DNA of 64,000 nt from Rebecca billardiae RCC1528 (Eukaryota; Protista; Haptophyta). Position numbers and translations under genes: made by a program. Location: contig OZ251226.1 in NCBI GenBank assembly GCA_965240325.2, positions 1,302,001 to 1,366,000 on the forward strand. The letters run 5' to 3'. Below are positions 2,793 to 62,086 of the stretch, piece by piece (within the stretch, counting starts at the first letter, position 1; every line of letters begins with the position of its first letter). Below the pieces are notes generated by a model. The model had not been told where the DNA came from and did not search any database. It saw only the letters and a list, made by a program, of their open reading frames with translations.

Positions 2793-2909
2793 ACATGTAA
2801 TAAGGAGAAAAAATGCCTTATCGTCAAGGAGCTTTCCGCTTTCTAAAGCTCATTCAGGCCGGGCCAATAAGAATTTGCGAGATGACATGTAATACGGAGA
2901 AAAAATGCC

Positions 2910-2910
<1 letters not shown>
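2793..2910 (+). repeat. 26-bp direct repeat abutting the microsatellite, possible subterminal repeat of an element
   Basis: ACATGTAATAAGGAGAAAAAATGCCT (2793-2818) and ACATGTAATACGGAGAAAAAATGCCT (2885-2910), 1 mismatch. Confidence 0.75.
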
Positions 2911-3277
<367 letters not shown>

Positions 3278-3434
3278 CCGCGGTGCAGGGCGGAGCGCGC
3301 AGCGTGGAGCCCGCTCCGTGGGCCCTAACCACGTAAACGTTTCAAAAAGATCTTTGATCAAGAAAAAAGGGACGGGGGACGATTTTCATGGCTGGAGGAG
3401 ACCGAGTTTCGAATTTTGAGACCCTCTCCCAACC

Positions 3435-8929: not shown

Positions 8930-9064
<135 letters not shown>

Positions 9065-9329: not shown

Positions 9330-10041
9330 CAAGGGCGGTAAGGGCTGCGAACTCCCAGTGCCGCGAGTGAGAGGAGGTTGGGTGCGCGCCATGCCGCCAC
9401 GCGCTGCCGCACACGAGCTTGATCACGTTCCACGCGGCTGCTGAAAGGTGCTCGTCGAGCATTCCTCGGCCATCAGAAATGAGCTTGGATATTAGCGGCT
9501 GTGAGCGCATATCAGTGCGAGAAATACGACGACTTGGGGACTCTTGTGCCATCATAGGATGCCAGTCGTTCACACATCAGTGGTCTGCGCATGTCTATCG
9601 CGCTTTGCTGCCTTCCCATGATCGTCTCAACGTGAGCATGTTCAAACTTATTGGCATATTAGTGCACACTCGACAGCATGAAAACGCGGGCGCGCCGACC
9701 CATGCGGGCGTCAGCGCGGCGGCACGCGGCGGCATGGCGCGCGCCCATCATACGCGAGCCTCGCCCCGGGCGCACGCCCGACCCGCGCCGACCGCACCGC
9801 ACACCGCGCACGCGCCAGCGGCTGGCGCGTGGCCACACGGCTGGATGTTGGTGCGGCGCGCGGGCGCGGGCTGGCCTGAGGCACGGCGAGGGCGCCGGCG
9901 AGCGCGGCGCGCGGCGTGGGAGGGTACTACGTGCTGTCTAGCAGGCGACCAACCACGCGCGCCGTGTCCGCGCCCGCTGCCGCGGGCGCAGGAGCACGCG
10001 GCGTGCGCACCCCACGCGCCCTCCAGGGCGGCCTCCCAGGA
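9330..10041. mobile_element. Internally deleted, truncated copy of the 11641-12725 foldback element, in opposite orientation
   Basis: Starts CAAGGGCGGTAAGGGCTGCGAACTCCCAGTGCCGCG, closely matching the reverse complement of the 12725 end. 9385-10040 matches the reverse complement of ~11690-12330. Confidence 0.7.
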
Positions 10042-10065
10042 GAGTCACTATGGCGTCGTCGAGCG

Positions 10066-11241
10066 ATGGCGTCGTCACTCGTCAACTCGTGTGCTGGTGA
10101 TGGTGGTCGATGTCCGCGCACACGATCAGCTGATCGTGCTGTCCTGGCTGTGTGCTGCCTGCTTCCGATGGCATGGGCTGGAGACGACGCCGCACGGCTG
10201 CATCACGCCGGCGCCAGTGCCCCGACTCGCGTGGTCGCCACGCTCGGCACCATTCCGGGTCGGGACCCGTCAGACGCCATCGCGAGCCTCCTGGGGCAAC
10301 AGCCGGCCCTCGACGCCATCCACGTCACCCTGGGCGGGAGCTCGAAGTTCAATCTGACGACACCGCCGGAGCCGTCCGCCGCTTTGCTCGCCGCCGTCCG
10401 CGCTGGTCTCGGGCGCGTGCATCTCCACAGCCTCGAGCTCAGCGAGGACACCGGACCGGCAGACAAGTACCTGCGCACACTGCGCGTGGAGCGCGAGCCC
10501 ACGACGGTTGTGCTGGTCGTGGACGACGACCATAAATATGCGCCATCGTTTGCGAACGTGCTGGTAGACGAGCTCACGACGCGTGGACGTGGACATGCTG
10601 TCGGTGGCTCGGGCGCCGTCTTTGCAGACAACATTGCGCGACACCGCTTCTGCTTGGGGAGCACGAATCGTTCGTGCGCCGAGCAGATGACTCGGAAATG
10701 TGTGGACCCTGACAGCGGGACTACTGTGTATACACGCAGTCTGCGCGAGGGCTGTGCGCGCAGCGCAGAAGTGCTTCACGGCTTCTGCGGCATTGCATTC
10801 TGGCGCGGAGACATCAACGCGAGCCGGCTGGACGCGTTGGTGCGCGCGGTGCCTGGTGGGCCGCACAACTGGGACGACGACCTGCTCCTCGCGACCGAGA
10901 TGCTTCGCGCGGGTGTGCAACGGTGGACGGTGGGCGTGCCGGTCCCGGTTATCACACCTGCTGCATTCGTGCATCCACTCAGCAGCTCCACCGAGCATCG
11001 GTGTGCTGGGTTTGGGCGCACTTTTCGCTACGCGCTCAAAAACCAGTTCGGGGTGCGATGGCTGCAGCAGCACTGGCAGGCATGGACGCACGTGAATATG
11101 TCCACGCTGGCGGTTGGAGACGATGCCCTGGAGGAGCTCTTCACCACGTGCTTGTCTGACCTCGTTCTGCATGAACAGAAGCGTGCGCAACGCGCTGCAG
11201 AAAGGCGCGAACGCAAGCGCTCGGCGCGGCCACTTCTCTGA
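10066..11241 (+). CDS. GT-A fold (GT2-like) glycosyltransferase, paralogue 1, with N-terminal hydrophobic segment
   Basis: Motifs VVATLGTIPGR, SLLGQQ, DTGPADK, VLVVDDD (DxD), VLHGFCGI, DDDLLL, typical of a GT-A family seen in protists, bacteria and giant viruses. Intronless. Confidence 0.75.
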   Translation: MASSLVNSCAGDGGRCPRTRSADRAVLAVCCLLPMAWAGDDAARLHHAGASAPTRVVATLGTIPGRDPSDAIASLLGQQPALDAIHVTLGGSSKFNLTTPPEPSAALLAAVRAGLGRVHLHSLELSEDTGPADKYLRTLRVEREPTTVVLVVDDDHKYAPSFANVLVDELTTRGRGHAVGGSGAVFADNIARHRFCLGSTNRSCAEQMTRKCVDPDSGTTVYTRSLREGCARSAEVLHGFCGIAFWRGDINASRLDALVRAVPGGPHNWDDDLLLATEMLRAGVQRWTVGVPVPVITPAAFVHPLSSSTEHRCAGFGRTFRYALKNQFGVRWLQQHWQAWTHVNMSTLAVGDDALEELFTTCLSDLVLHEQKRAQRAAERRERKRSARPLL

Positions 11242-11640: not shown

Positions 11641-12725
11641 CAAGGGCTGCGAACTCTGCCGCGCCGGTGAGAGGAGGTTGGGTATCGATCTCCTGGGGCG
11701 CCGCCCTGGAGGGCGCGTGGGGTGCGCACGCCGCGTGCTCCTGCGCCCGCGGCAGCGGGCGCGGACACGGCGCGCGTGGTTGGTCGCATGCTAGACAGCA
11801 CGTAGTGCCCTCCCACGCCGCGCGCCGCGCTCGCCGGCGCCCTCGCCGTGCCTCAGGCCAGCCCGCGCCCGCGCGCCGCACCAAGAGCCAGCCGTGGCCA
11901 CGCGCCAGCCGCCAGCGCGCGCGCGGTGCGCGGTGCGGTCGGCGCGGGGCGGGCGCGCGCCCGGGGCGAGGCTCGTGTACGATCGGCGCGCGCCATGCCG
12001 CCACGCGCCGCCACGCTGGCGCCCGCATGGGTCGGCGCACGCGTTTTCATGCTGTCGAGTGTGCATTGGCCAAGTTTGAAAATGCTCATGTTGAGACGAT
12101 CACGGGAAGGCAGCGAAGCGCGATAGACATGCGCAGACCACTGATGTGTGAACGATTGGCATCCTATGATGGCGCAAGAGTCCCCAAGTCGTCGCATTCC
12201 TCGCACTGACGCGCTCACAGCCGCTTGTCCAAGCTCATTTCTGATGGCTGAGGAATGCTCGACGAGCACCCATCAGCAGCCGCGTGGAACGTGATCAAGC
12301 TCGTGTTCGGCGACGCGTGGCGGCATGGCGCGCGCCGATCGTACACGAGCCTCGCCCCGGGCGCGCGCCCGCCCCGCGCCGACCGCACCGCACACCGCGC
12401 GCGCGCCGGCGGCTGGCGCGTGGCTACAACTGGATCTTGGTGCGGCGCGCGGGCGCGGGCTGGCCTGAGGCACGGCGAGGGCGCCGGCGAGCGCGGCGCG
12501 CGGCGTGGGGGGGTACTACGTGCTGTCTAGCATGCGACCAACCACGCGCGCCGTGTCCGCGCCCGCTGCCGCGGGCGCAGGAGCACGCGGCGTGCGCACC
12601 CCACGCGCCCTCCAGGGCGGCGCCCCAGGAGACATAGCCGCTGCGCCGCGAGGGCGCACGAGTTGATCGATACCCAACCTCCTCTCACTCGCGGCACTGG
12701 GAGTTAGCAGCCCTGACCGCCCTTG
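11641..12725. mobile_element. Foldback-type non-autonomous element with long inverted arms and CAAGGG...CCCTTG ends (P/Galileo-like)
   Basis: Arms ~11641-12008 and ~12314-12725 are reverse complements, with one ~30-bp indel. Flanks CTCCTCG / CTCCACC may be a degenerate 7-bp TSD. Confidence 0.65.
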
Positions 12726-12743
12726 CTCCACCGGCTCGTTCCT

Positions 12744-13574
12744 CACGGTTCGGCAAGAGAGCAAGGACCCGTGAAGGTGCTTACATCAGTTGCTCGCTCC
12801 TTCATGAGATCGGTGCGCAGTGATCGGTGAAGGAGTGAGGACTGATGATGTATGAGCTGAGGAAGCCGGACAAACACCAAGCAAGCAGTGCCGGACCGCC
12901 ACGGTTCGGCAAGAGAGCAGGACCCGTGAAGGTGCTTACATCAGTTGCTCGCTCCCTTCATGAGATCGGTGCGCAGTGATCGCGGTGAAGGAGTGAGGAC
13001 TGATGATGTATGAGCTGAGGAAGCCGGACAAACACCAAGCAAGCAGTGCCGGACCGCCACGGTTCACGGCAAGAGAGCAAGGACCCGTGAAGGTGCTTAC
13101 ACCCGTGAAGGTGCTTACATCAGTTGCTCGCTGCCTTCATGAGATCGGTGCGCAGTGATCGGTGAAGGAGTGAGGACTGATGATGTATGAGCTGAGGAAG
13201 CCGGACAAACACCAAGCAAGCAGTGCCGGACCGCCACGGTTCGGCAAGAGAGCAGGACCAGTGAAGGTGCTTACATCAGTTGCTCGCTCCCTTCATGAGA
13301 TCGGTGCGCAGTGATCGCGGTGAAGGAGTGAGGACTGATGATGTATGAGCTGAGGAAGCCGGACAAACACCAAGCAAGCAGTGCCGGACCGCCACGGTTC
13401 ATATCACTACAAGAGAGCAAGGACCCGTGAAGGTGCTTACACCAGTGAAGGTGCTTACATCAGTTGCTCGCTCCCTTCATGAGATCGGTGCGCAGTGATC
13501 GGTGAAGGAGTGAGGACTGATGATGTATGAGCTGAGGAAGCCGGACAAACACCAAGCAAGCAGTGCCGGACCGC
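12744..13574 (+). repeat. Tandem array of five ~156-180 bp units, with a sixth partial copy at ~14990-15140
   Basis: Units start CACGGTTC at 12744, 12900, 13058, 13235, 13393; core GTGAAGGTGCTTACATCAGTTGCTCGCT...GCAAGCAGTGCCGGACCGC. Confidence 0.95.
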
Positions 13575-14025
13575 CCCGGCCGGCGGTGCGGAAGCACTGC
13601 GCAGGCGGGTCTACCGGATGCTTCGTGGCGCCCTCGCCAAGGCGCGCGCTTCTTGCGGCCGCAGATCTCCCAGTGGATGCGGCGCGTGGTCGGTGCCAAG
13701 GCGCATGCGGAATAGTGTGCGCCCCTCGTACCTGAACCTCACCCCGGCTGCTCGCCGGACCCAGCGCCATGACCGCTGCGCGCACCGCGTGCGCGTGCGG
13801 CTCGCCGAGTCTGCGGACGCTTCGTGGCAAACCGCGGGCGGTCAGAAGGATGCAGCAGCTTCGGGAGGTGCCGCATCGGAGTGCCTGCTGCTTCGAGCTG
13901 CTGGTTCTTGCTTCTCCCACCACCTGCGAGCACTCCCACCACCTGCGCGCTTGCTTCTCCCACCACTCCTGCGCGCTTGCGTCTGCTTGCTTGGCCGTCC
14001 CGCCACCTGCGCGCTTGTTTCTTGC

Positions 14026-15915
14026 GTGCAGCAGTACCATACCATGCACGCAGCAGTACCATACCATGCGCACAGCAGTGCCATACCATGCGCGCAGCAG
14101 TACCGCCAGTACCATACCATCATGCGTGCAGCAGTATCATACCATGCCGCGCGGCACGGTACCATACCATGCGCGCAGCAGCAGTACATACCACCATGTG
14201 TGCAGCAGTACCATACCGCCATCATGCGCACAGCAGTACCATACCATGCGCGCAGCAGTACCATACCATCATGTGCGCAGCAGTACCTACCATGCATGCA
14301 GCAGTACCATACCATGCGCGCAGCAGTAGGCCATAACATACCATGCAGTACCATATACCATGCACACCGAGCGAGCAGTACCACACTACAGTGCGCGCAG
14401 CAGTACCATACCATGCGCGCCGCAGTACCATACCATGCGAGCAGCAGTACCATACCATCATGCGTGCAGCAGTACCATACTACCATGCTTGCAGCAGTAC
14501 CATACCATGTGCACAGCGGTGCCATACCATGCCATGTGAGTGCCATGGATACCATGCGCCCAGCAGTACCATAGTCCATACCATGTGTGCCGGCAGTACC
14601 ATATGGCACTACTGCACGCATGGTAGGGATGGTACTGCTGCACGCATGGTATGGTACTGCGCTGCAAGCATGGTCGTATGGTACTGCTGCGTGCATGATG
14701 GTATGGTACTGCTGCGCGCATGGTATGGTACTGCTGCGCACATGGTATGGTACTGCTGTGCGCATGGTAGTATGGTACTGCTGCACGCATGATGGCCGTA
14801 CTGCTGCGCGCATGATGGTATGGTACTCAGCTGCGAGCATGGTATGGTACTGCTGCGCGCATGCGGTATGGCAATGGTACTGCTGTGTGCATGGTACACT
14901 GTACAGTATGAAGCTGCGGAGAGAGCAAGGACCTGTGAAGGTTCCTCAGTTCAGCTTCCTCTCGGTTGCTTCCGGTTCCTCACTGTTTCAAGAGAGCAAG
15001 GACCTGTGAAGGTGCTTCAGCTTCCTCCGTTGCTCGCTCCCTTCATGAGATCGGTGCGCAGTGATCGGTGAAGGAGTGAGGACTGATGATGTATGAGCTG
15101 AGGAAGCCGGACAAATACCAAGCAAGCAGTGCCGGACCGCCCCGGCCGGCGGTGCGGAAGCACTGCGCAGGCGGGTGGCGGGTCTACGATGCTTCGCCCT
15201 CGCCAAGGCGCGCGCTTCTTGCGGCCGCAGATCTCCCAGTGGATGCGGCGCGTGGTCGGTGCCAAGGCGCATGCGGAATAGTGTGTGCCCCTCGTACCTG
15301 AACCTCACCCCGGCTGCTCGCCGGACCCAGCGCCATGACCGCTGCGCGCACCGCGTGCGCGTGCGGCTCGTAGTCGCGGCCACGCTTCGTCTGCAAACCG
15401 CGGGCGGTCAGAAGGATGCAGCAGCTTCGGGAGGTGCCGCATCGGAGTGCCTGCTGCTTCGAGCTGCTGGTTCTTGCTTCTCCCACCACCTGCGAGCACT
15501 CCCACCACCTGCGCGCTTGCTTCTCCCACCACCTGCGCGCTTGCGTCTGCTTGCTTGGCTCCCACCACCTGCGCGCTTGTTTGTTTCTTGCGTGCAGCAG
15601 TACCATACCATGCACGCAGCAGTACCATACCATGCGCACAGCAGTGCCATACCATGCGCGCAGCAGTACCGCCAGTACCATACCAACATGCGTGCAGCAG
15701 TACCATACTGTACCATGCACGTGGCAGTACCATACCATGCGCGCAGCAGTACTTACCATACTGCTACCATGCGCGCAGCAGTACCATACCATCATGCGTG
15801 CAGCAGTACCATACCATACGACCATGTGAGTGCCATACCACGCGCCCAGCAGTACCATACCATGCGCGCAGCAGTACCGCCAGTACTCTGTCACTACCAT
15901 CATGCGTGCAGCAGT
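14026..15915. repeat. ~22-bp minisatellite (GCAGCAGTACCATACCATGCGC) within a larger direct duplication (~13410-14130 vs ~14990-15700)
   Basis: Forward units ~14026-14602, inverted units ~14603-14900 (centre CCAT|ATGG), forward again ~15594-15915. Confidence 0.92.
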
Positions 15916-16169
15916 ATTGATGATAATGAAGTCGTGGTGGCCTGTGTGGCGCGCGGCGCTGACGGTCACGGAGCGGCCAGCGGGGCGAGCCCTGCATTCC
16001 GGTAGGACCGGGGTGAATGCAGCATTGCCGGGTGCAACCCGGCAATGCCCGCCTGAATGGTAGTTAAAACAGTACTAGGGGGTACAGCCGTACAGACGAG
16101 TCACGGGCGCCTCCCGAACATTATTCACGAATATTTCATTTATGTATGCTGATCGATTTGCATGACACA

Positions 16170-16398
16170 GAGGAGCTCTTCATCACGTGCTTGTCTGACC
16201 TCGTTCTGCATGAACAGAAGCTTGCGCAACGCGCTACTGCAAAAAGGCAAGAACGCAAGCGCTCGGCACGGCCACTTCTCTGACTTCGCATCCAGTGCGG
16301 AGCGCTGCGCCAGCTGGACAAACGCGAAGGACCCTGGAAGCTGCAGAAATCATGCACATGTGGTGGGTAGTTTACACATATAGTGTCACAGATGACTT
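16170..16398 (+). pseudogene. 3' fragment of the glycosyltransferase gene and its downstream sequence, bracketed by ~90-110 bp direct repeats
   Basis: Matches ~11130-11355 (GAGGAGCTCTTC...CACAGATGACTTTA). Flanked by TAGTTAAAACAGTACTAGG...TTTGCATGACACA at 16061-16169 and 16399-16485. Confidence 0.85.
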
Positions 16399-18110
16399 TA
16401 GTTAAAACAGTACTAGGCGGTACAGGCGAGTCACGGGCGTCCCGAACATTATTCACGGATTTCATTTGCTGATTTGCATGACACATATGAATACGTCTAT
16501 ACGAGTCCAGTGTAGTTCTCGATCACTGAGCGCCTATAACAGTGTAACCCTAACAGAACCGGAAGCGCCCGCGTGTTTGTCCATCGATCCAGCTGGTGCA
16601 ACGCGCGGAAAGCGCCGCCCCCTTCATATGGTCCTGTGAAGTGTCATCATCACTCATCTGCATACATGTGCTGACGAGAACAGCATTCAGCTGAGATCTA
16701 AGTGCGTTGCAGCGTTCCTGGCGGACTGGCGGTTGATTATTATATCAGTGCTGCATAAGCGGCAGTCCGGCAGACGAGTCCAGTTGTTCTGACAATATCG
16801 CGCACTGCGTGCTCGTCATGCGCCCGATTAATGTGAACGCCACGTCAACTATGCTATTACTCAGCCTGGCCGGTGAACTGCTTGACTACGGGCTCAGTAC
16901 AACTATTACTACTGTTAATCAACAATTAACGACTAGCTTAGTAACTGACGAGTGACGGGCGGGCCGTCGGCGTTGCGTCGTGGGCGGGGCCAGTTACAGA
17001 ATTGAGAATACAGAGTACAGGCACAGTGTGTGAGTCGCGGAGCTCGCCACGGGTAAATACGCCTTGAAGGTTGGGCAGCTGCTCGACGCCGTTCTAGCTC
17101 GGCGTGAGCAGCCAGTCAGAGGCACCCAATGCCGATGGGCCCGCCACACTCACAGCACCAGCTGCGTATTCGGTAAATTTGGACTATATTTGACTTTGAG
17201 TATTGCGTACTGGCTAGCTTCGTACGGCTACGTGACAGTGCCAGCGCCAGCAGCGAGGGGAGGCCTGCCACGCGTCAGGCGGCCATCCTGCTCGGCCATG
17301 TCGCTTCGTGCGCTGGCCGGCGGCCAGTGAAATAAACTCCAAACTGCTTGGCAGTTGATGACAATGCTACACTAACAATGAGTGACGCCGATGATCGACT
17401 TGCATGTCAGTTCATCACAGTTGTCACATTGATATACTGGAAACCCACGAGAACAAAGGCACGACTTCACGCTGGGGACCAGCCCGTCGCAGGCCTTTTT
17501 TGACGCCACTGCTGCGTCTGTAACCGGGTCACACATATATATATGCACAATTCACGAACCCGCTTAGGCGCGCCATAGGACAAAAGCCGCTCGTCGTTCG
17601 GTCAAATACCGCTCGTCGTTCGGCGCTTTGCGTACTCACATTCGCGCGAATCGCATCGGCCCATTTCCTCAAACACGTCGTGGCGATACTGCATGCTGTT
17701 CCACCACCTCTGACCTCCGCCGCCTTCGGCATGATGTCGGGGGGGGGGGGGGGGGTATTATTAATCCCGAATTTCCTACGTGCATGATTTCTTTTCCTCT
17801 CCGACTCCAGGCGGTTGGCTCCAACCGCCCGGATGGTCGAAGGACCCGGTACTGCCTGCAGGGCTGCAGGCGAAAGCTGCGCTGCCAGTTACCTATGGCG
17901 GCCGTTTGGCCCACCGCTTTTCGCATCCGTTTCTGACTGAGGACCGACATCGTCACACCGCCCGCTCTGCGCTCGTCCGCACGAACGACGCCCTGCTGAC
18001 AACGTCCGCAGCCCCTGGACCGAATGCTATGGTAAGCCCCTGCGTGGTGACCGGGGAACTGGTCAGGCGGAATAAACATCAGAGTGTGACAACTGGAATA
18101 CTGCCGGTAA

Positions 18111-19337
18111 TTAACGATGGCGGTCGTTATGATGTGCCGACGAGTCGTTCTGGATGAGGAGTGGCCGATCCAAGAGCCTGAGTTTGTGCCTTTCTGCAGT
18201 GCCTTGTCCGCGCGCCAGTTTCGCCTTCTGCTCATGCCGAGTGAGGTCGGACAAGCAGGTGGTGAAGAGCTCCTCCAGGGCATCTCCCACCGCTAGTGTG
18301 GACATATTCACGTGCGTCCATGCCTGCCAGTGCTGCTGCAGCCATCGCACCCCGAACTGGTTTTTGAGCGCGTAGCCAAAAGTGCGCCCAAACCCAGCAC
18401 ACCGATGCCTGATGAAGCTGCTGAGTGGGTGCACGCGTGCAGCAGGTGTAGGGACCGGGGACGGCACGCCCACCGTCCACCGTTGCACACCCGCGCGAAG
18501 CATCTCGGTCGCGAGGAGCAGGTCGTCGTCCCAGTTGTGCGGCCCACCAGGCACTGCGCGCACCAACGCGTCCAGCCGGCTCGCGTTGATGTCTCCGCGC
18601 CAGAATGCAATGCCGCAGAAGCCGTGAAGCACGTCCGCGCTGCGCGCACAGCCCTCGCGCAGACCGCGTGTAGCCACAGAAGTCCCTCTATCAGGGTCGA
18701 CACATTCCCCAGTCATCTGCTTGGCGCACGACCGCTTCGTGCTCCCCAAGCACAAGAGGTGCCGCGCAATGTTGTCTGCAAAGACGGCGCCCGAGCCACC
18801 GACAGCATGTCCACGTCCACGCGTCGTGAGCTCGTCCACCAGCACGTTCGCAAACGACGGTGGATATTTGCTGTCGTCATCCACGACCAGCACAACTGTC
18901 GTGGGCTTGCGCTCCACGCGCAGTGTGCTCAGGTACTTGTCTGCCGGTCCGGTGTCCTCGCTGAGCTTGAGGCGGTGGAGATGCACGCGCCCGCGACCAG
19001 CGCGGACGGCGGCGAGCAAAGCGGCGGACGGCTCCGGCGGTGTCGTCAGATTGAACTTCGAGCTCCCGCCCAGGGTGACGTGGATGGCGTCGAGGGCCGG
19101 CTGTTGCCCCAGGAGGCTCGCGATGGCGTCTGACGGGTCCCGACCCGGAATGGTGCCGAGCGTGGCGACCACGCGAGTCGGGGCACTGGCGCCGGCGTGA
19201 TGCAGCCGTGCGGCGTCGTCTCCAGCCCATGCCATCGGAAGCAGGCAGCACACAGCCAGGACAGCACGATCAGCTGATCGTGTGCGCGGGCATCGACTAC
19301 CACCACCAGCTCGCGAGTTGACGAGTGACGACGCCAT
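18111..19337 (-). CDS. GT-A fold glycosyltransferase, paralogue 2
   Basis: 408-aa ORF highly similar to 10066-11241 with the same motifs and a different C-terminal tail. Confidence 0.75.
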   Translation of the reverse strand: MASSLVNSRAGGGSRCPRTRSADRAVLAVCCLLPMAWAGDDAARLHHAGASAPTRVVATLGTIPGRDPSDAIASLLGQQPALDAIHVTLGGSSKFNLTTPPEPSAALLAAVRAGRGRVHLHRLKLSEDTGPADKYLSTLRVERKPTTVVLVVDDDSKYPPSFANVLVDELTTRGRGHAVGGSGAVFADNIARHLLCLGSTKRSCAKQMTGECVDPDRGTSVATRGLREGCARSADVLHGFCGIAFWRGDINASRLDALVRAVPGGPHNWDDDLLLATEMLRAGVQRWTVGVPSPVPTPAARVHPLSSFIRHRCAGFGRTFGYALKNQFGVRWLQQHWQAWTHVNMSTLAVGDALEELFTTCLSDLTRHEQKAKLARGQGTAERHKLRLLDRPLLIQNDSSAHHNDRHR

Positions 19338-19353
19338 CGCTCGACGACGCCAT

Positions 19354-19461
19354 CGCCGATGTCGGTTGGTTCGTGCTCTGACCTGCTGCCCGGCGGCCAG
19401 TGAAATAAACCCCGAACTGCTTGGCAGAACTTGTCAATTTGATATTCTCGCCGCCACCCCA
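19354..19461. promoter_or_regulatory. 108-bp spacer, candidate bidirectional promoter between GT paralogues 2 and 3
   Basis: Only unique DNA between two divergent ATGs. Contains CCGGCGGCCAGTGAAATAAAC(C/T)CC(G/A)AACTGCTTGGCAG, also present at 17317-17354. Confidence 0.45.
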
Positions 19462-19477
19462 ATGGCGTCGTCGAGCG

Positions 19478-20713
19478 ATGGCGTCGTCACTCGTCAACTC
19501 GTGTGCTGCTGGTGGTAGTCGATGTCCGCGCACACGATCGGCCGATCGTGCTGTCCTGGCTGTGTGCTGCCTGCTTCCGATGGCATGGGCTGGAGACGAC
19601 GCCGCACGGCTGCATCACGCCGGCGCCAGTGCCCCGACTCGCGTGGTCGCCACGCTCGGCACCATTCCGGGTCGGGACCCGTCAGACGCCATCGCGAGCC
19701 TCCTGGGGCAACAGCCGGCCCTCGACGCCATCCACGTCACCCTGGGCGGGAGCTCGAAGTTCAATCTGACGACACCGCCGGAGCCGTCCGCCGCTTTGCT
19801 CGCCGCCGTCCGCGCTGGTCGCGGGCGCGTGCATCTCCACCGCCTCGAGCTCAGCGAGGACACCGGACCGGCAGACAAGTACCTGCGCACACTGCGCGTG
19901 GAGCGCGAGCCCAAGACAGTTGTGCTGGTCGTGGACGACGACAACACATATCCGCCGTCGTTTGCGAACGTGCTGGTGGACGAGCTCACGACGCGTGGAC
20001 GTGGACATGCTGTCGGTGGCTCGGGCGCCGTCTTTGCAGACAACATTGCGCGACACCGCTTCTGCTTGGGGAGCACGAAGCGGTCGTGCGCCGAGCAGAT
20101 GACTCGGAAATGTGTGGACCCTGACAGCGGGACTACTGTGTATGCACGCGGTCTGCGCGAGGGCTGTGCGCGCAGCGCGGACGTGCTTCACGGCATATTC
20201 GGCATTGCATTCTGGCGCGGAGACATCAACTCGAGCCGGCTGGACGCGTTGGTGCGCGCAGTGCCTGGTGGGCCGCACAACTGGGACGACGACCTGCTCC
20301 TCGCGACCGAGATGCTTCGCGCGGGTGTGCAACGGTGGACGGTGGGCGTGCCGTCCCCGGTTATCACGCCTGCTGCACGCGTGCACCCACTCAGCAGCTT
20401 CACCAAGCATCGGTGTGCTGGGTTTGGGCTCACACATCGCTACGCGCTCAAAAACCAGTTCGGGGTGCGATGGCTTCAGCAGCACTGGCAGACATGGACG
20501 CACGTGAATATGTCCGCACTGGCGGTGGGGGATGTCCTGGAGGAGCTCTTCACCACGTGCTTGTCTGACCTCGCTCGGCATGAGCAGAAGGCGAAACTTG
20601 CGCGACATCCAACGCGTAGCAGCAAAAGCTCAAGCACAAACGCAACTACAAGTTCTACAACTGATGCTGCCGGCTCGGCGCAGGCACTCACTACTCCAGA
20701 ACGCTTCGCTTGA
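19478..20713 (+). CDS. GT-A fold glycosyltransferase, paralogue 3, with Ser/Thr-rich tail
   Basis: ATG equivalent to paralogues 1 and 2 (MASSLVNS) and the same motifs. Confidence 0.75.
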   Translation: MASSLVNSCAAGGSRCPRTRSADRAVLAVCCLLPMAWAGDDAARLHHAGASAPTRVVATLGTIPGRDPSDAIASLLGQQPALDAIHVTLGGSSKFNLTTPPEPSAALLAAVRAGRGRVHLHRLELSEDTGPADKYLRTLRVEREPKTVVLVVDDDNTYPPSFANVLVDELTTRGRGHAVGGSGAVFADNIARHRFCLGSTKRSCAEQMTRKCVDPDSGTTVYARGLREGCARSADVLHGIFGIAFWRGDINSSRLDALVRAVPGGPHNWDDDLLLATEMLRAGVQRWTVGVPSPVITPAARVHPLSSFTKHRCAGFGLTHRYALKNQFGVRWLQQHWQTWTHVNMSALAVGDVLEELFTTCLSDLARHEQKAKLARHPTRSSKSSSTNATTSSTTDAAGSAQALTTPERFA

Positions 20714-21541
20714 CGACATCATTGCGTAGTCGTGATTAAACACTAATGACTACGAATACTGCGCCATATCCGTGATGGCGGCGGACGCGGAGTAGCTTAC
20801 GGCTAGTAGTTAGTAGCGACTATAATGCTCGACTGCCGCGCGCGGCATCATCAGCAATTCATCAGCAGCAGGGTTCAGCAGCTGAGGCCTGAGCGCAGAG
20901 TCACTGCAGTCACGCAGACTGTGCCAGTCGTCAATCAAGAATGCAGACCCGGTCCGATGATGAGTCGCCTCCGAGACTGCAGAAACTGTCTGTTGAGTAG
21001 CGCGAGCTTACTTACTGCGCGCCCTCGGCCTCGGGCTGCTCGTAACACGGTGCGCCGCCTCCTGCTCGGCCCCTGGCCCTGCTGCACGGGCCTGCTCGGA
21101 GTGAGTGAGTCGGCTCCTGGCCTGGCGGGCCGCCTCGCCCTCGGCCTTCGCAGCCGGGTAAGCAGATTCGTCGCGTCATCATCATCAGGCTCATCAGCAG
21201 AATAAATTGTCACTTAGCTGCTGATGTCGTCACCGCGACTTAGTAGTACTAACAACGACGAGTCACTTAGTAGACGACAGAGTCAGACGTGCGCGTGGCC
21301 GTAGTACGTGGGCTAATGGTGATGGTGCCCGGGGGCCGGCGCCGTCCGCGCCGTGGCCCGTGCCCGGCTCACGGACACGGTCCGTTGGGCGGCCGTTGTC
21401 AGGCCGGCTGCGGGCGCTGGCCCGGGCGGCGTGGCGGCTTGGCACTGAAGCCTGACGATGACGGATGAGTCTGTTATTATGATACATTTAGCTGCTGGCC
21501 ACTCGTCATCAGTCGTCAGTATCGTCTGTCCGCTTTCGTCG

Positions 21542-22522
21542 TCAAGTGAGGGTGCGGACCGGTGCCGTTCCACACACGTCCTGTGCGCTCGCCCCCGGGC
21601 AATGCGTCGAGATGAACGCATCGCAAGCAGCACTGCGCTCATGCACAAAGGCGAACTCGGCGCAGCCGCCCCTCAGGCAGCCCCACACGTTCGCTTCCTT
21701 GTGGAAGACGCGCATCTCTGCCCGGTCCGCCGCAGCGAACAAGGCGGCGAGCCGATTTCTACTCATGTGCGTGTTGTTCCTGTAATGGAGCTCGATCTGC
21801 AGCTGCCCCACCTGTACACGCCCAGCAGCGATGGCGTCGAAGATGTCTGGGAGCACCTGCCACTCGCAGCCCTCGCAGTCGATCTTCAAGACGTCTACCC
21901 GCCTGGACTCGGGGCCGTAGCGCGCCACCATGTCCTCGAACGAGATCAGCTTCTGCGTCCTGTTGGTGCTCGCCCCTAGGCCGAGCGGATGGAAGCGAGT
22001 GACGTGCCAGCCGGTGAAGTTCAGCCGCCCCGCCAGGGTGTGGTCGAAGGTGTGGATCCTGCACCCAGTGCGCGCGTGCATGGCGAACTCGAAGCTCCAG
22101 TCGTTGTTGCTGCCAATGCTGAACACCGTGCAAGGCGTTCGCAGCGCATCGAGGCCGCACACAAACTTGGGCCCATCGCCAACAGGCACGTAGTGGGTCA
22201 AGCCGCCGAGCTCGACGAGGCGGCCGCCCACGCGCTCCTCGCTCTCGCACACCCACTCGGGCTCGATCGGGTTGTAGAACTTCTCCAACATCAGCACAGC
22301 CTTCTTCAGCTGGTGGAGCCGGGCGTTCTCCACGGCGCGGTAGCCGCGCCGAGCCTCCGCCAGCTCGAGCTTTCTGCGCCACAGCGCTGGACATCCGGCG
22401 ATCAGCGTCGGGTCCTCAGCCGCACCGAGCGAGAAGATGCCTCCATGCAGCGTGACGACCAGCGCGGCGACGAGGCAGGTGCGCGCGCGCCATCTGTGAC
22501 CGCCGCCACAACCCCTCTCCAT
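21542..22522 (-). CDS. Methyltransf_22 / METTL24-like SAM-dependent methyltransferase with N-terminal signal or anchor
   Basis: GDGPKFVC, CTVFSIGSNNDWSFE, IHTFD, DVLKIDCEGCEW, QLQIELH, FHKEAN...CAEFAF motifs. Confidence 0.85.
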   Translation of the reverse strand: MERGCGGGHRWRARTCLVAALVVTLHGGIFSLGAAEDPTLIAGCPALWRRKLELAEARRGYRAVENARLHQLKKAVLMLEKFYNPIEPEWVCESEERVGGRLVELGGLTHYVPVGDGPKFVCGLDALRTPCTVFSIGSNNDWSFEFAMHARTGCRIHTFDHTLAGRLNFTGWHVTRFHPLGLGASTNRTQKLISFEDMVARYGPESRRVDVLKIDCEGCEWQVLPDIFDAIAAGRVQVGQLQIELHYRNNTHMSRNRLAALFAAADRAEMRVFHKEANVWGCLRGGCAEFAFVHERSAACDAFISTHCPGASAQDVCGTAPVRTLT

Positions 22523-22729
22523 AGGCCACCGGTGCCCACTCCGACTTAATTAATACACCTGGGGGCATGATGGATGCCAAGGGTGACGTGATGAAATTGC
22601 CTTGTCGAGTCGTCGTCGGGAGGTCGGGGAAAGCCGATACTTCGATTAGATAGCAGCAACATGCGCTCACGGACATACCGTATGAGTAAACTGTATAGTG
22701 TCCGAAGTTCACCTTGCCTCCTCATCGCA

Positions 22730-23761
22730 CTACTGCGAAGCCCACGCGTTGCAGTGGGGCTTGTGCACCTTCCACGAGCTGCGCAGGTGCTCACGCGAGC
22801 AGAAGACCGCCACATGGCATCGCTCGCACTTCTTCAGACCACTGCCTGTCCGTCCGCAGGCGATGCAGCACGTGGCGACCACGTCACGCTCTCCAGCCTC
22901 CTCGGCCAGGACCTCGCGTACACGGTCTCCGAGGGCTGGATCGAGCTCTTGGCCACGGTGCAACAGCCGAGCTGCCTCCTCCACATCACGCTCCACTCCC
23001 GTGCCATGCAGCGTCAGCTCTCCAAGACCAATGTGCCCATGTGCGCTCCCTCCCTGAGTAGCCAGCCGGTACCAGCGCACAGCCTCGCCCCAGTCCTGCG
23101 GCACGCCCTCGCCTTGTGCGTACTGCGCGCCCAGATTGCACTGCGCGAGTGCGTCGCCCTGCTCGGCCGCCAGCCGGTACCAGCGCATCGCCTCGCCCCA
23201 GTCCTGCGGCACGCCCTCGCCTTGTGCGTACCGCACACCCAGATTGCACTGCGCGAGTGCGTGGCCCTGCTCGGCCGCCAGCCGGTACCAGCGCATCGCC
23301 TCGCCCCAGTCCTGCGGCACGCCCTCGCCTTGTGCGTACCGCACACCCAGATTGCACTGCGCCTGAGCGTAGCCCTGCTCGGCCGCCAGCCGGTACCAGC
23401 GCACAGCCTCGCCCCAGTCCTGCGGCACGCCCTCGCCATGTGCGTACTGCAGGCCCAGAATGCACTGCGCTCTGGCGTCGCCCTGCTCGGCCGCCAGCCG
23501 GTACCAGCGCGCTGCTGCCTCGAGGTCCTTTGGCTGCCCAAGCGCGCCGTTCACGTAGATGTGGCCCATCTCCGTCTGCGCATCTGCAAAGCTGCGCTCA
23601 GCGGCGAGGGTGTACAGGCGAAAGGCTTCGCGGTGGTCCTGTGCGATGCCCTCGCCATTCTCAGCCCGCCGCGCCAGAAGGAACGTCGCACGCGCGTCCC
23701 CACGCGCCGACTTGCGTAAGAGGAGCCTGACCGCAGGGCTAGCCGTCGAATCCGCCATCAT
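22730..23761 (-). CDS. Sel1-repeat protein with C-terminal MYND zinc finger, copy A
   Basis: 36-aa Sel1 repeats (AQCNLGVRYAQGEGVPQDWGEAVRWYRLAAEQG) and CIACG...CERC...FCSREH...W..HK.HC. Confidence 0.92.
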   Translation of the reverse strand: MMADSTASPAVRLLLRKSARGDARATFLLARRAENGEGIAQDHREAFRLYTLAAERSFADAQTEMGHIYVNGALGQPKDLEAAARWYRLAAEQGDARAQCILGLQYAHGEGVPQDWGEAVRWYRLAAEQGYAQAQCNLGVRYAQGEGVPQDWGEAMRWYRLAAEQGHALAQCNLGVRYAQGEGVPQDWGEAMRWYRLAAEQGDALAQCNLGAQYAQGEGVPQDWGEAVRWYRLATQGGSAHGHIGLGELTLHGTGVERDVEEAARLLHRGQELDPALGDRVREVLAEEAGERDVVATCCIACGRTGSGLKKCERCHVAVFCSREHLRSSWKVHKPHCNAWASQ

Positions 23762-23905
23762 TCGATCGCACCCGATTCACCCGCCATTCATAGGCTGTCC
23801 GACTCTACACTGCTGTGTAGACGGAGGGGGGCCGGACAGGCTACGCCATTCACGGACGGGAGGTGTTGATCACCAAACCGAGCTCAGAATGAGGACCGAC
23901 GGTGA

Positions 23906-24955
23906 ATGATGGCGGATTCGACGACTAGCCCTGCGGTCAGGCTCCTCTTACGCAAGTCGGCGCGTGGGGACGCGCGTGCGACGTTCCTTCTGGCGCGGCG
24001 GGCTGAGAATGGCGAGGGCATCGCACAGGACCACCGCGAAGCCTTTCGCCTGTACACCCTCGCCGCTGAGCGCAGCTTTGCAGATGCGCAGACGGAGATG
24101 GGCCACATCTACGTGAACGGCGCGCTTGGGCAGCCAAAGGACCTCGAGGCAGCAGCGCGCTGGTACCGGCTGGCGGCCGAGCAGGGCTACGCTCAGGCGC
24201 AGTGCAATCTGGGCGTGCGGTACGCACAAGGCGAGGGCGTGCCGCAGGACTGGGGCGAGGCGGTGCGCTGGTACGGGCTGGCGGCCGAGCAGGGCCACGC
24301 ACTCGCGCAGTGCAATCTGGGCGTGCGGTACGCACGAGGCGAGGGCGTGCCGCAGGACTGGGGCGAGGCTGTGCGCTGGTACCGGCTGGCGGCCGAGCAG
24401 GGCGACGCGCAGGCGCAGTGCAATCTGGGCGTGCGGTACGCACGAGGCGAGGGCGTGCCGCAGGACTGGGGCGAGGCGATGCGCTGGTACCGGCTGGCGG
24501 CCGAGCAGGGCCACGCACTCGCGCAGTGCAATCTGGGCGTGCAGTACGCACAAGGCGAGGGCGTGCCGCAGGACTGGGGCGAGGCGGTACGCTGGTTCCG
24601 GCTGGCTACTCAGGGAGGGAGCGCACATGGGCACATGGGTCTTGGAGAGCTGACGCTGCATGGCACGGGAGTGGAGCGTGATGTGGAGGAGGCAGCTCGG
24701 CTGTTGCACCGTGGCCAAGAGCTCGATCCAGCCCTCGGAGACCGTGTACGCGAGGTCCTGGCCGAGGAGGCTGGAGAGCGTGACGTGGTCGCCACGTGCT
24801 GCATCGCCTGCGGACGGACAGGCCGTGGTCTGAAGAAGTGCGAGCGGTGCCATGTGGCGGTCTTCTGCTCGCGTGAGCACCTGCGCAGCTCGTGGAAGGT
24901 GCACAAGCCCCACTGCAACGCGTGGGCTTCGCAGTGCGATGAGGAGGCAAGGTAG
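23906..24955 (+). CDS. Sel1-repeat protein with C-terminal MYND zinc finger, copy B
   Basis: Inverted duplicate of copy A with the same domains. Confidence 0.92.
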   Translation: MMADSTTSPAVRLLLRKSARGDARATFLLARRAENGEGIAQDHREAFRLYTLAAERSFADAQTEMGHIYVNGALGQPKDLEAAARWYRLAAEQGYAQAQCNLGVRYAQGEGVPQDWGEAVRWYGLAAEQGHALAQCNLGVRYARGEGVPQDWGEAVRWYRLAAEQGDAQAQCNLGVRYARGEGVPQDWGEAMRWYRLAAEQGHALAQCNLGVQYAQGEGVPQDWGEAVRWFRLATQGGSAHGHMGLGELTLHGTGVERDVEEAARLLHRGQELDPALGDRVREVLAEEAGERDVVATCCIACGRTGRGLKKCERCHVAVFCSREHLRSSWKVHKPHCNAWASQCDEEAR

Positions 24956-25099
24956 TGATTTATAGTGAAGGTGAACTTCCGGGACTGCACTGTACTCACA
25001 CTGTAGTCTGTACAGAACTTCCGGGACACTGTAGTCTGTACACTGTCGGCTGCTGATCAGAATTAATAATGGCGTCACATTTCCTTCATATCATCGTCA

Positions 25100-39670: not shown

Positions 39671-39832
39671 GATATTCGTCTGCTTATAAATAGTAAACGA
39701 TAGCTATACTGTACGTGGTAGTGACCATTAAGCCGCCAGCAGTACGTACGTACCCGGTACTGCTCATCCTCAGTCGGACAGTGATGCTGCAGCGGCGGCG
39801 CAGTGCGCCACTGCCAGCTAAGCAGCAATAAT

Positions 39833-40054
39833 GGCCCGCGGTGCAGGGCGGAACGCGCAGCGTGGAGCCTGCGACGCGGGCACTAACCACGTTTCAAAAA
39901 TATCTCATTATGGCCCGCGGTGCAGGGCGGAGCGCGCAGCGTGGAGCCCGCACCAGCGGGCCCGAACAACGTTTCAAAAAGATCTTTGATCAAGAAAAAA
40001 GGGACGGGGGACGATTTTCATGGCTGGAGGAGACCGAGTTTCGAATTTTGAGAC
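39833..40054 (+). repeat. Two tandem hairpin units plus tail, homologous to 3275-3422 (element terminus)
   Basis: GGCCCGCGGTGCAGGGCGGA.CGCGCAGCGTGGAGCC at 39833 and 39912; ~86-bp tail matches 3337-3422. Confidence 0.9.
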
Positions 40055-60979: not shown

Positions 60980-62086
60980 CAAGGGAGGTCCGGGCCGGGA
61001 GCTCCCAGCGAGCGGCCAGCGCGACATCACCTCAAGGTTTTTTCCTGAGCGCCGGGCGGCAGCGGCGGCGAGGGCGGTGCTCCGCTGGCGGGGCGCGCAC
61101 GGGGCACGGCGCTGCGGGCGCGGATGTGCCCGCAGAGCCGGCGCGTGCGGACGGGCTGTTGCGGGAGAGCATCTGGCGCCCTCCTGCGCCGCGCGCATTG
61201 CGCCACGCCTCTTTCGCCTTGACTCAGGGCAGCGCGCACATGCGCGCCGCGTCAAGGCCAGCCTTGCCGCGCCGCAGCCGACCGCGCGCGCGCCGTGCGC
61301 GGCGTGGTCGGGAAGGAACGGGCGTGGCTGCCGGGCGAGATGGCGACATCACGTGCGCACGCCATGCCGCCCCGCCACGCCTTGACGAGCGTGTCGCCGG
61401 TCCGTTTGCACGCCTCTTCGAGTTGTCTCAAATGGTCTGCACGGCCTCGCGGTCGCGACCCTTGTCGGGACGATCATTGAGACACAGAACAGTGCCAGAC
61501 GGGCACGCGGACTACTCTTACATGAATGTCCATCACCACGTGGCCATGTAGAAGTGCTGGGTGCGACGCTTTCCTCGCGCTGATGCACTTTCATCATCTT
61601 TTTCGAGCTCAGGTCTGGCTTCAGGCACGGCAAGAAATCAGCACTCGTCAACAGCTGTGCGGATCCGTTATCGCGCCCTTTCGCGGCGCCGCGGGACGAC
61701 ATGGCGTGCGCACGTGATGTCGCCATCTCGCCCGGCAGCCGCGCCCGTTCCTTCCCGACCACGCCGCGCACGGCGCGCGTGCGGTCGGCTGCGGCGCGGC
61801 AAGGCTGGCCTTGACGCAGCGCGCATGTGCGCGCTGCCCTGAGTCAAGGCGAAAGAGGCGTGGCGCAATGCGCGCGGCGCAGGAGGGCGCCAGATGCTCT
61901 CCCGCAACAGCCCGTCCGCACGCGCCGGCTCTGCGGACACATCCGCGCCCGCAGCGCCGTGCCCCGTGCGCGCCCCGCCAGCGGAGCACCGCCCTCGCCG
62001 CCGCTGCCGCCCGGCGCTCAGGAAAAAACCTTGAGGTGATGTCGCGCTGGCCGCTCGCTGGGAGCTCCCGGCCCGGACCTCCCTTG
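60980..62086. mobile_element. Foldback non-autonomous DNA transposon with 387-bp TIRs and 7-bp TSD (P/Galileo-like)
   Basis: Arms 60980-61366 and 61700-62086 are near-perfect reverse complements; ends CAAGGG/CCCTTG; AACGAGG on both flanks. Confidence 0.88.

Follow-up and report, generated by a model that had tools for sequence, protein, structure and literature searches.

The question raised by this locus is why two genes, one for a predicted glycosyltransferase (GT) and one for a protein with Sel1 repeats and a MYND finger (Sel1-MYND), should each form a head-to-head palindrome, both of them within 7 kb. The DNA analyzed comes from Rebecca billardiae RCC1528 (Haptophyta; assembly GCA_965240325.2, contig OZ251226.1, positions 1,302,001 to 1,366,000 of the forward strand); this entire 64,000-nt stretch is referred to here as the window, and all coordinates are positions within it, its first letter being position 1 (Table 1). 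The host DNA is GC-rich, and the alga has a compact genome. The stretch surrounding the two pairs is crowded with further duplications and long-TIR elements.

Table 1. Features of the two palindromes and of related sequences in the window
Feature	Position	Strand	Remarks
Long-TIR element (copy of 11641-12725), truncated and inverted	9330..10043	-	Stops 6 nt before GT copy A
GT copy A, third full copy	10050..11241	+	CDS 10066-11241, 391 aa; outside the palindrome
Long-TIR element	11641..12725	+	Non-coding, foldback/MITE-like; downstream of GT copy A
Fragment D	16170..16400	+	From an A-type GT copy: 3′ end plus 3′ flank; ~96% identical to A
Orphan GT spacer copy, diverged	17282..17449	+	Carries an insertion of ~60 bp
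GT copy B, left arm gene	18111..19337	-	Intronless ORF, 408 aa; predicted GT-A fold glycosyltransferase; N-terminal hydrophobic segment
Left high-identity GT arm	18211..19353	-	Starts at out-of-frame upstream ATG (19353)
GT spacer, 108 bp	19354..19461	.	Presumed shared promoter
Right high-identity GT arm	19462..20604	+	Starts at out-of-frame upstream ATG (19462)
GT copy C, right arm gene	19478..20713	+	411 aa; DDD motif at residues 153-155
277-bp block, identical in three GT copies	19544..19820 (also 18995-19271, 10132-10408)	+	Probable conversion tract
Decayed 3′ tail of C	20605..20738	+	Homologous to B tail (~18108-18210), with short insertions
Methyltransferase gene, FkbM/Methyltransf_22	21542..22522	-	Single, between both palindromes; PF13383, E = 3.5e-28
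Sel1-MYND copy L	22730..23761	-	343 aa; array of four near-identical 108-bp units, 23081-23512
Sel1 spacer, 140 bp	23764..23903	.	Small internal hairpin; unrelated to GT spacer
Sel1-MYND copy R	23906..24955	+	349 aa; array of four near-identical 108-bp units, 24155-24586

Self-comparison of the window confirmed that both palindromes exist, with the spacers of 108 and 140 bp reported in the first-pass annotation, and that adjacent paralogs lie in opposite orientation at both pairs. The GT arms (1,143 nt, with 108 nt between them) are 95% identical, and the Sel1 arms (22732-23763 and 23904-24935; 1,032 nt, with 140 nt between them) are 97% identical, a gapped alignment of the latter extending over 22711-23763 and 23904-24953. 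As that annotation had it, all four ORFs are open, a 3-nt insertion in Sel1 copy L placing its stop 6 codons early, and the differences between the arms are clustered (p<0.001). Comparison of the spacers revealed neither residual palindromy nor common motifs, the GT spacer is not self-complementary (p=0.46), and a sigma-70 match in a spacer was set aside as irrelevant to a eukaryotic host.

The GT gene had been described as the pair alone; the window also holds a third full copy (A), a 3′ fragment (D) bordered by a direct repeat of ~100 bp, and a diverged spacer copy that has no GT sequence on either side. Carriage of copy A as cargo of a Pack-type transposon was considered and rejected: the outer ends at 9330 and 12725 share no flank, and the left element is truncated at its inner end. 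A database look-up returned no exact copy of any GT or Sel1 ORF, and no orthologous locus was found in the searches.

The description of the duplicated unit as essentially the CDS is supported, the CDS being roughly the unit that is both duplicated and homogenized. In both pairs, the coding core is far more alike than the flanks and tails. Homology sets in, as claimed, 16 nt (GT) and 2 nt (Sel1) upstream of the in-frame ATG. In GT, homology opens with the first letter of an upstream, out-of-frame ATG, the start of a 16- to 18-codon uORF. This boundary is sharp to the base, with no detectable homology upstream of it, and lies at the identical nucleotide in three GT copies, each preceded by sequence unrelated to the others. 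In copy A, the onset is preceded by a 6-nt filler matching a sequence 24 nt downstream. At the other end, homology had been thought to end near the stop codon, but there is no 3′ breakpoint: it fades into tails that align past the arms with many short insertions, at 77 of 93 bases in GT copies B and C (p=0.005) and 54 of 63 bases in the Sel1 pair (p=0.004). These decayed tails show that the duplications are older than the 95 to 99% identity of the cores would indicate.

The three full GT copies allow the arms to be compared with a copy that is not part of a palindrome. Over 1,053 coding nt, there are 44 differences between A and C, 48 between B and C, and 54 between A and B, with 25 sites private to A, 29 to B, and 19 to C. 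Copy A is as near to the arms as the arms are to each other; thus, homogenization is not palindrome-specific, and preferential arm-to-arm homogenization is ruled out, a comparison that concerns the GT gene, the Sel1 pair having no outside copy for comparison. The 277-bp block shows no silent changes against ~10 expected (P of ~4e-5, for a block picked after the fact). A raw runs test gave a p value of 0.001; when multibase events were collapsed, it rose to 0.76 and shared tracts were not in excess, so that the case for conversion rests on this block and on the contrast between near-identical cores and decayed tails. Gene conversion among the copies is indicated by these two observations. The proposal that the palindrome favors arm-to-arm conversion is supported in part: conversion is indicated, whereas the A-C and B-C counts and the presence of the block in copy A do not support conversion driven by the palindrome.

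The GT product is predicted to be a GT-A fold glycosyltransferase. An alignment-based model of copy C (pLDDT of 89) yielded 388 PDB matches at E values up to 0.001. KfiA and the GlcNAc-transferase domain of heparosan synthase are the top profile matches (E values of 1e-15 and 6e-9) and the nearest solved structures to the model (E = 4e-10) and have the DDD (DxD-type) motif in common with it, at only 12 to 16% identity. The DDD motif is nearly invariant across the family. The ω values are 0.60 to 0.70 (0.70 overall) and at most 1.28 in subregions; positive selection was ruled out, as ω is nowhere significantly above 1, in a test that, with few substitutions, has little power against selection at single sites. 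The variable residues fall at less conserved columns of the family (0.20 versus 0.35, p=2e-4), and CpG-driven hypermutation was discarded as a source, with only 9 of the 72 changes fitting it. The GT differences are mostly tolerated changes within variable loops. A peptide-pattern search of metagenome contigs returned no GT relatives. A relative at 49% identity from the same sample is also one uninterrupted ORF, which implies that the absence of introns is ancestral; no second called copy adjoins either this gene or the relatives in other organisms.

In the Sel1 copies, both the Sel1 and zf-MYND Pfam models score above their curated cutoffs. Copies L and R differ at 34 positions, 28 of them inside the array of 108-bp repeats (p=2e-6), and at 18 of these 28 both states are present in further units; outside the array, the caps carry 1 difference in 249 nt and 5 in 348 nt. 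Sel1 differences thus come mostly from exchange among the units of the array. With an ω of 0.56 for the array in register and a pN/pS of 0.76 pooled over the eight units, positive selection is not demonstrated at this locus. Sel1 searches returned generic Sel1 proteins only, and no paper in the literature searched joined Sel1, MYND, and haptophytes.

We consider it probable that these are ordinary adjacent inverted paralog pairs, subject to patchy conversion among nearby copies whatever their orientation, in a duplication-prone, repeat-rich stretch. Each gene would have been duplicated locally, leaving one copy head-to-head across a short intergenic piece, which probably persisted because one or both copies are still expressed from it. 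Patchy nonallelic gene conversion and purifying selection would hold the coding cores alike, the flanks meanwhile eroding through short insertions, and the exchange of Sel1 units would belong to the gene family, not to the palindrome. What this reading leaves unexplained is the sharp ATG-associated 5′ boundary in three GT copies: a boundary at the same base below unrelated upstream sequences is a poor fit to gradual erosion alone and counts against it.

Sharp 5′ junctions, at an ATG or 2 nt from one in both pairs, speak for a start-codon fold-back, a recurring, nonadaptive mutational mechanism that is compatible with later conversion and that we regard as unlikely here. Divergent genes on a short promoter, with ATGGC-like starts, would constitute a natural short inverted repeat, at which a broken or stalled strand would fold and copy one gene over its neighbor, the loop being the promoter and the arms running from the ATG; later cuts at the border of the stem-loop would free arm copies, of which copy A would be one, and leave spacers behind as orphans, as at 17.3 kb. 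In keeping with this, homology of copy A sets in, after its filler, where that of the arms does; the orphan spacer shares its first five bases with the start of arm B (at the left junction only); the order A(+) B(-) C(+) recalls an inverted triplication (PMC10766186); an ATGGC context occurs at several gene starts in the window; and the spacers between the inverted arms are short. However, no remnant of a replaced neighbor gene was identified, copy A lacks the spacer expected upstream of it under a simple triplication, both spacers exceed the junctions of yeast ODIRA in length (where inverted repeats of ~5 nt lie 40 to 80 nt apart [PMC10766186]), and the comparison comprises two loci only, with no outgroup genome. 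The wider claim that short bidirectional promoters with similar start-codon contexts are recurrent fold-back sites, at which the neighbor is overwritten ATG to ATG and the palindromes seed further copies, is more doubtful still. If true, it would mean a genome-wide, promoter-preserving route of gene duplication giving ready-to-express palindromes, which would account for the expansion of variable families such as Sel1-MYND; should an ATG start prove far commoner in palindromic pairs than in other paralogs across the genome, a specific duplication route giving immediately expressed copies would be indicated.

The first-pass annotation had proposed a dedicated system for diversifying paired paralogs, in which the palindrome is kept so that conversion or spacer inversion makes two coexpressed variants. 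The occurrence of two cases within 7 kb, with every ORF open and the differences clustered, agrees with this, and some of the GT changes fall in loops that are predicted less well and may contact the acceptor. Nevertheless, the proposal is distinctly improbable: the GT arms are no more alike than the nonpalindromic copy is to them, ω does not exceed 1 within error (~0.7 for GT, with changes at family-variable positions), and the Sel1 variation is mostly unit shuffling. Further, the spacers are mutually unrelated and without a shared motif, no recombinase or recombination site was seen among the part of the window genes scanned (the gene between the pairs encodes a methyltransferase), the 49% GT relative and those elsewhere have no adjoining second called copy, and, with arms starting at the ATG, a flip of the spacer would merely swap the sides of the promoter.

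RNA-templated copying, by which cDNA would make or homogenize the copies so that homology ends with the transcript, could draw on the intronless genes and the common 5′ boundary of three copies; it is highly improbable given that no copy has a poly(A) remnant or target-site duplication, that the 49% relative likewise has no interruption in its ORF, and that the tails decay gradually. An assembly or amplification artefact (a fold-back chimera, or two alleles set side by side) is hardly credible, even though no contig was obtained across either spacer, because the arms differ by 3 to 5% without frameshifts, their decayed tails differ, the third GT copy bears variants of its own, and Logan contigs from two runs (possibly of the same sample as the assembly) match positions 20547-22725 and 21025-22725 exactly, including the methyltransferase gene, the longer one running from the C-specific end of the arm into the tail of Sel1-L. 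A Logan contig stops inside sequence that is unique in the window, which suggests that further near-identical copies or alleles may exist elsewhere.

Sex-chromosome palindromes likewise have inverted gene-bearing arms around a spacer and undergo arm-to-arm conversion; their arms are far longer and nearly identical, noncoding DNA included. Unlike these, the arms here are ~1.1 kb long, 95 to 97% identical, and, for GT, no closer to each other than to the outside copy. Fold-back inverted duplications (PMC3907307) and ODIRA products (PMC10766186) resemble this locus in their short-spacer palindrome, in the order A(+) B(-) C(+), and in the lengthening of junctions by later rearrangement; here, by contrast, the palindromes are gene-sized and fixed, the junction is at an ATG, and copy A has no native upstream sequence.

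Fungal NLRs (PMC4986451) have repeat arrays that are strongly conserved and shuffled, and comparable arrays are described for brown-algal LRR/TPR candidates (PMC3341825). The Sel1 array resembles these in its near-identical units, swapped within and between genes, and in variation at a few unit positions (12, 14, 21, 22, and 25). Sel1-MYND differs from them in having Sel1 repeats and a MYND finger and in lacking a NOD domain.

Read as ordinary inverted paralogs, the two pairs would be one more case of inverted neighboring duplicates subject to patchy conversion, from a little-studied algal lineage and with spacers unusually short for stable eukaryotic palindromes, and the GT trio provides a built-in control for whether palindromes raise conversion rates. 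Newborn duplicates in Caenorhabditis elegans are frequently adjacent and inverted (PMC2728529); the pairs described here differ from them in the onset of homology at the start codon and in tails that are no longer young. Closer parallels are the dipteran hsp70 inverted pairs, which undergo concerted evolution (PMC3071340), and the C. elegans hsp16-1/hsp16-48 inverted module, with its 416-bp spacer, and hsp70-7/-8 (PMC3966223). As in the palindromes of R. billardiae, these genes are head-to-head, with near-identical cores, homology that decays into diverged flanks, and conversion that is independent of orientation, whereas in the algal pairs the spacers are shorter (108 and 140 bp), the 5′ flanks have essentially no homology, constraint is weaker (ω of ~0.6 to 0.7), and the genes are not dosage-type stress genes.

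Both inverted gene pairs were correctly located by the first-pass annotation, and the four ORFs it called intact are all open, with a 3-nt insertion in Sel1-L placing the stop six codons early. One methyltransferase gene separates the pairs. Of the six Sel1 repeats in the Sel1-MYND gene, which also encodes a MYND finger, four are near-identical 108-bp units. The other gene, which has no Pfam match of its own, is predicted to be a GT-A fold glycosyltransferase (GT) from Atlas features, a profile built on 61 relatives, and a high-confidence model (pLDDT 89), to which KfiA and heparosan synthase are the closest structures. The DNA is GC-rich and neighboring genes are spliced, as fits a eukaryotic alga. 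A GT relative (49% identical; L001:388-1644) from the same sequencing run is single-copy, lacks a palindrome, and adjoins a RING/ZZ gene; in another organism (L013:1865-5731), the GT domain is the C-terminus of a 1288-aa fusion protein with a sulfatase domain. No second called copy was seen beside GT relatives on short contigs from the same sample and other organisms.

Gene pairs, further GT copies, and repeats in the window
Feature	Coordinates	Strand	Arms or copies	Spacer
GT palindrome (ORFs B, left arm; C, right arm)	18111-19337; 19478-20713	-; +	1143 nt, 95% identical	108 nt
Sel1-MYND palindrome (ORFs Sel1-L; Sel1-R)	22730-23761; 23906-24955	-; +	1032 nt, 97% identical	140 nt
GT copy A, third full copy	10050-11241	+		
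GT 3' fragment D	16170-16400			
Orphan copy of GT spacer, diverged	about 17282-17449			
Invariant block (A; B; C)	10132-10408; 18995-19271; 19544-19820		277 bp	
uORF (A; B; C)	10050-10100; 19297-19353; 19462-19518			
Long-TIR element, inverted copies	9330-10043; 11641-12725		94% identical	1.6 kb
Non-coding element	60980-62086		402 bp, 98% identical	
Satellite, 22-25-bp units	14000-14910; 15570-15920			
Tandem duplication, 1566 bp	13410-14308; 14989-15878			
Tandem array, ~156-180-bp units	12738-13579			
Direct repeat, ~100 bp	16061-16169; 16399-16485			
Short repeated element	3272-3422; 39831-40054			
TA runs	2900-3270; 8930-9060			

Copy A, fragment D, and the orphan spacer copy, all inside 9 kb, were absent from the first-pass annotation. 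Lying outside the palindrome, copy A is a natural control for the palindrome hypothesis. Over 1053 coding nt, A and C differ at 44 sites, B and C at 48, and A and B at 54 (private sites: A, 25; B, 29; C, 19); the closest pair is not the palindromic one. The invariant block, where about 10 silent changes would be expected (P about 4e-5, for a block picked after the fact), suggests conversion among all local GT copies; no further tracts were evident among them once clustered sites were collapsed (p=0.76). The proposed gene conversion is suggested in this form; the idea that the palindrome favors arm-to-arm exchange failed the test, the outside copy A being as close as the arms and sharing the block.

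Both pairs have the sharp 5' homology start that had been claimed, with no upstream homology found. In the GT copies, homology begins in all three at the identical base, the A of an out-of-frame ATG. This ATG sits in an 11-14-bp tandem duplication of the GT start; the uORF that it opens, 16-18 codons long, overlaps the true start, so that efficient translation would not be assured. The B side carries the longer, 14-bp version, which, with the orphan spacer copy, indicates that B is probably the native neighbor of the spacer and that the C and A junctions are likely new. The supposed 3' breakpoint near the stop codon was not borne out: the tails can still be aligned beyond the arms, interrupted by short insertions (p=0.005 and p=0.004), so the duplications are older than the cores would suggest.

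These are local inverted duplicates, with A equally close, cores homogenized, tails eroded, and Sel1 units shuffled. Conversion would act regardless of orientation, the short promoter between the arms would be retained, and selection would trim central deletions back as far as the ATG. As to how the pairs arose, the main rival is a start-codon fold-back through ATGGC-type microhomology on either side of a divergent promoter, with later cuts at the stem-loop border. This would account for both the common 5' base and the copy order A(+) B(-) C(+) (compare PMC10766186); no replaced neighbor gene was found, however, and we consider this origin rather improbable.

An artefact is an unlikely source of both pairs: the arms carry differences but no frameshifts, and their decayed tails are distinct. 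A Logan contig from run ERR14847148 exactly matches 20547-22725, joining the C-specific arm end with the Sel1-L tail, and one from run ERR14847149 matches 21025-22725; contigs of these runs, possibly from the same sample as the assembly, cross neither spacer. Since they stop within sequence unique in the window, we infer that beyond it lies either a further, nearly identical Sel1 3' end or an allele.

The proposed programmed diversification locus failed its tests, with no excess of amino acid changes. GT omega is 0.60-0.70, with no sub-region significantly above 1, and changed residues fall in family columns of low conservation (0.20 versus 0.35, p=2e-4); the DDD motif and second aspartate pair are unchanged among copies. 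Between Sel1-L and Sel1-R, 28 of 34 differences lie inside the repeat array, and 18 of these 28 are repeat shuffling, both states being present in other Sel1 units; the caps contain 6 differences in 597 nt.

The region around copy A is rearrangement-prone, with one truncated and one whole long-TIR element flanking A amid satellites and tandem repeats. The two elements enclose A as a third palindrome-like structure, the left one having an internal deletion and no inner end. The non-coding element has CAAGGG-type ends, a 7-bp target-site duplication, and inverted arms related to those of the right long-TIR copy; their interiors share little or no similarity. Its ends and target-site length resemble those of P-type DNA transposons. 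The satellite, part of the 1566-bp duplication, flips orientation near 14610, forming an imperfect palindrome, and the tandem array has a higher-order ~335-bp repeat. The direct repeat, one copy of which is inflated by short insertions, exactly bounds fragment D. The short repeated element adjoins TA/TATG microsatellites.

Among young duplicates, adjacent inverted ones are common (PMC2728529), and concerted evolution classically shows itself in near-alike cores beside decayed tails (PMC3966223, PMC3071340). This locus belongs with, and behaves like, pairs of adjacent inverted paralogues that undergo concerted evolution, resembling the hsp-type pairs of the latter two reports in its homogenized cores and eroded tails.
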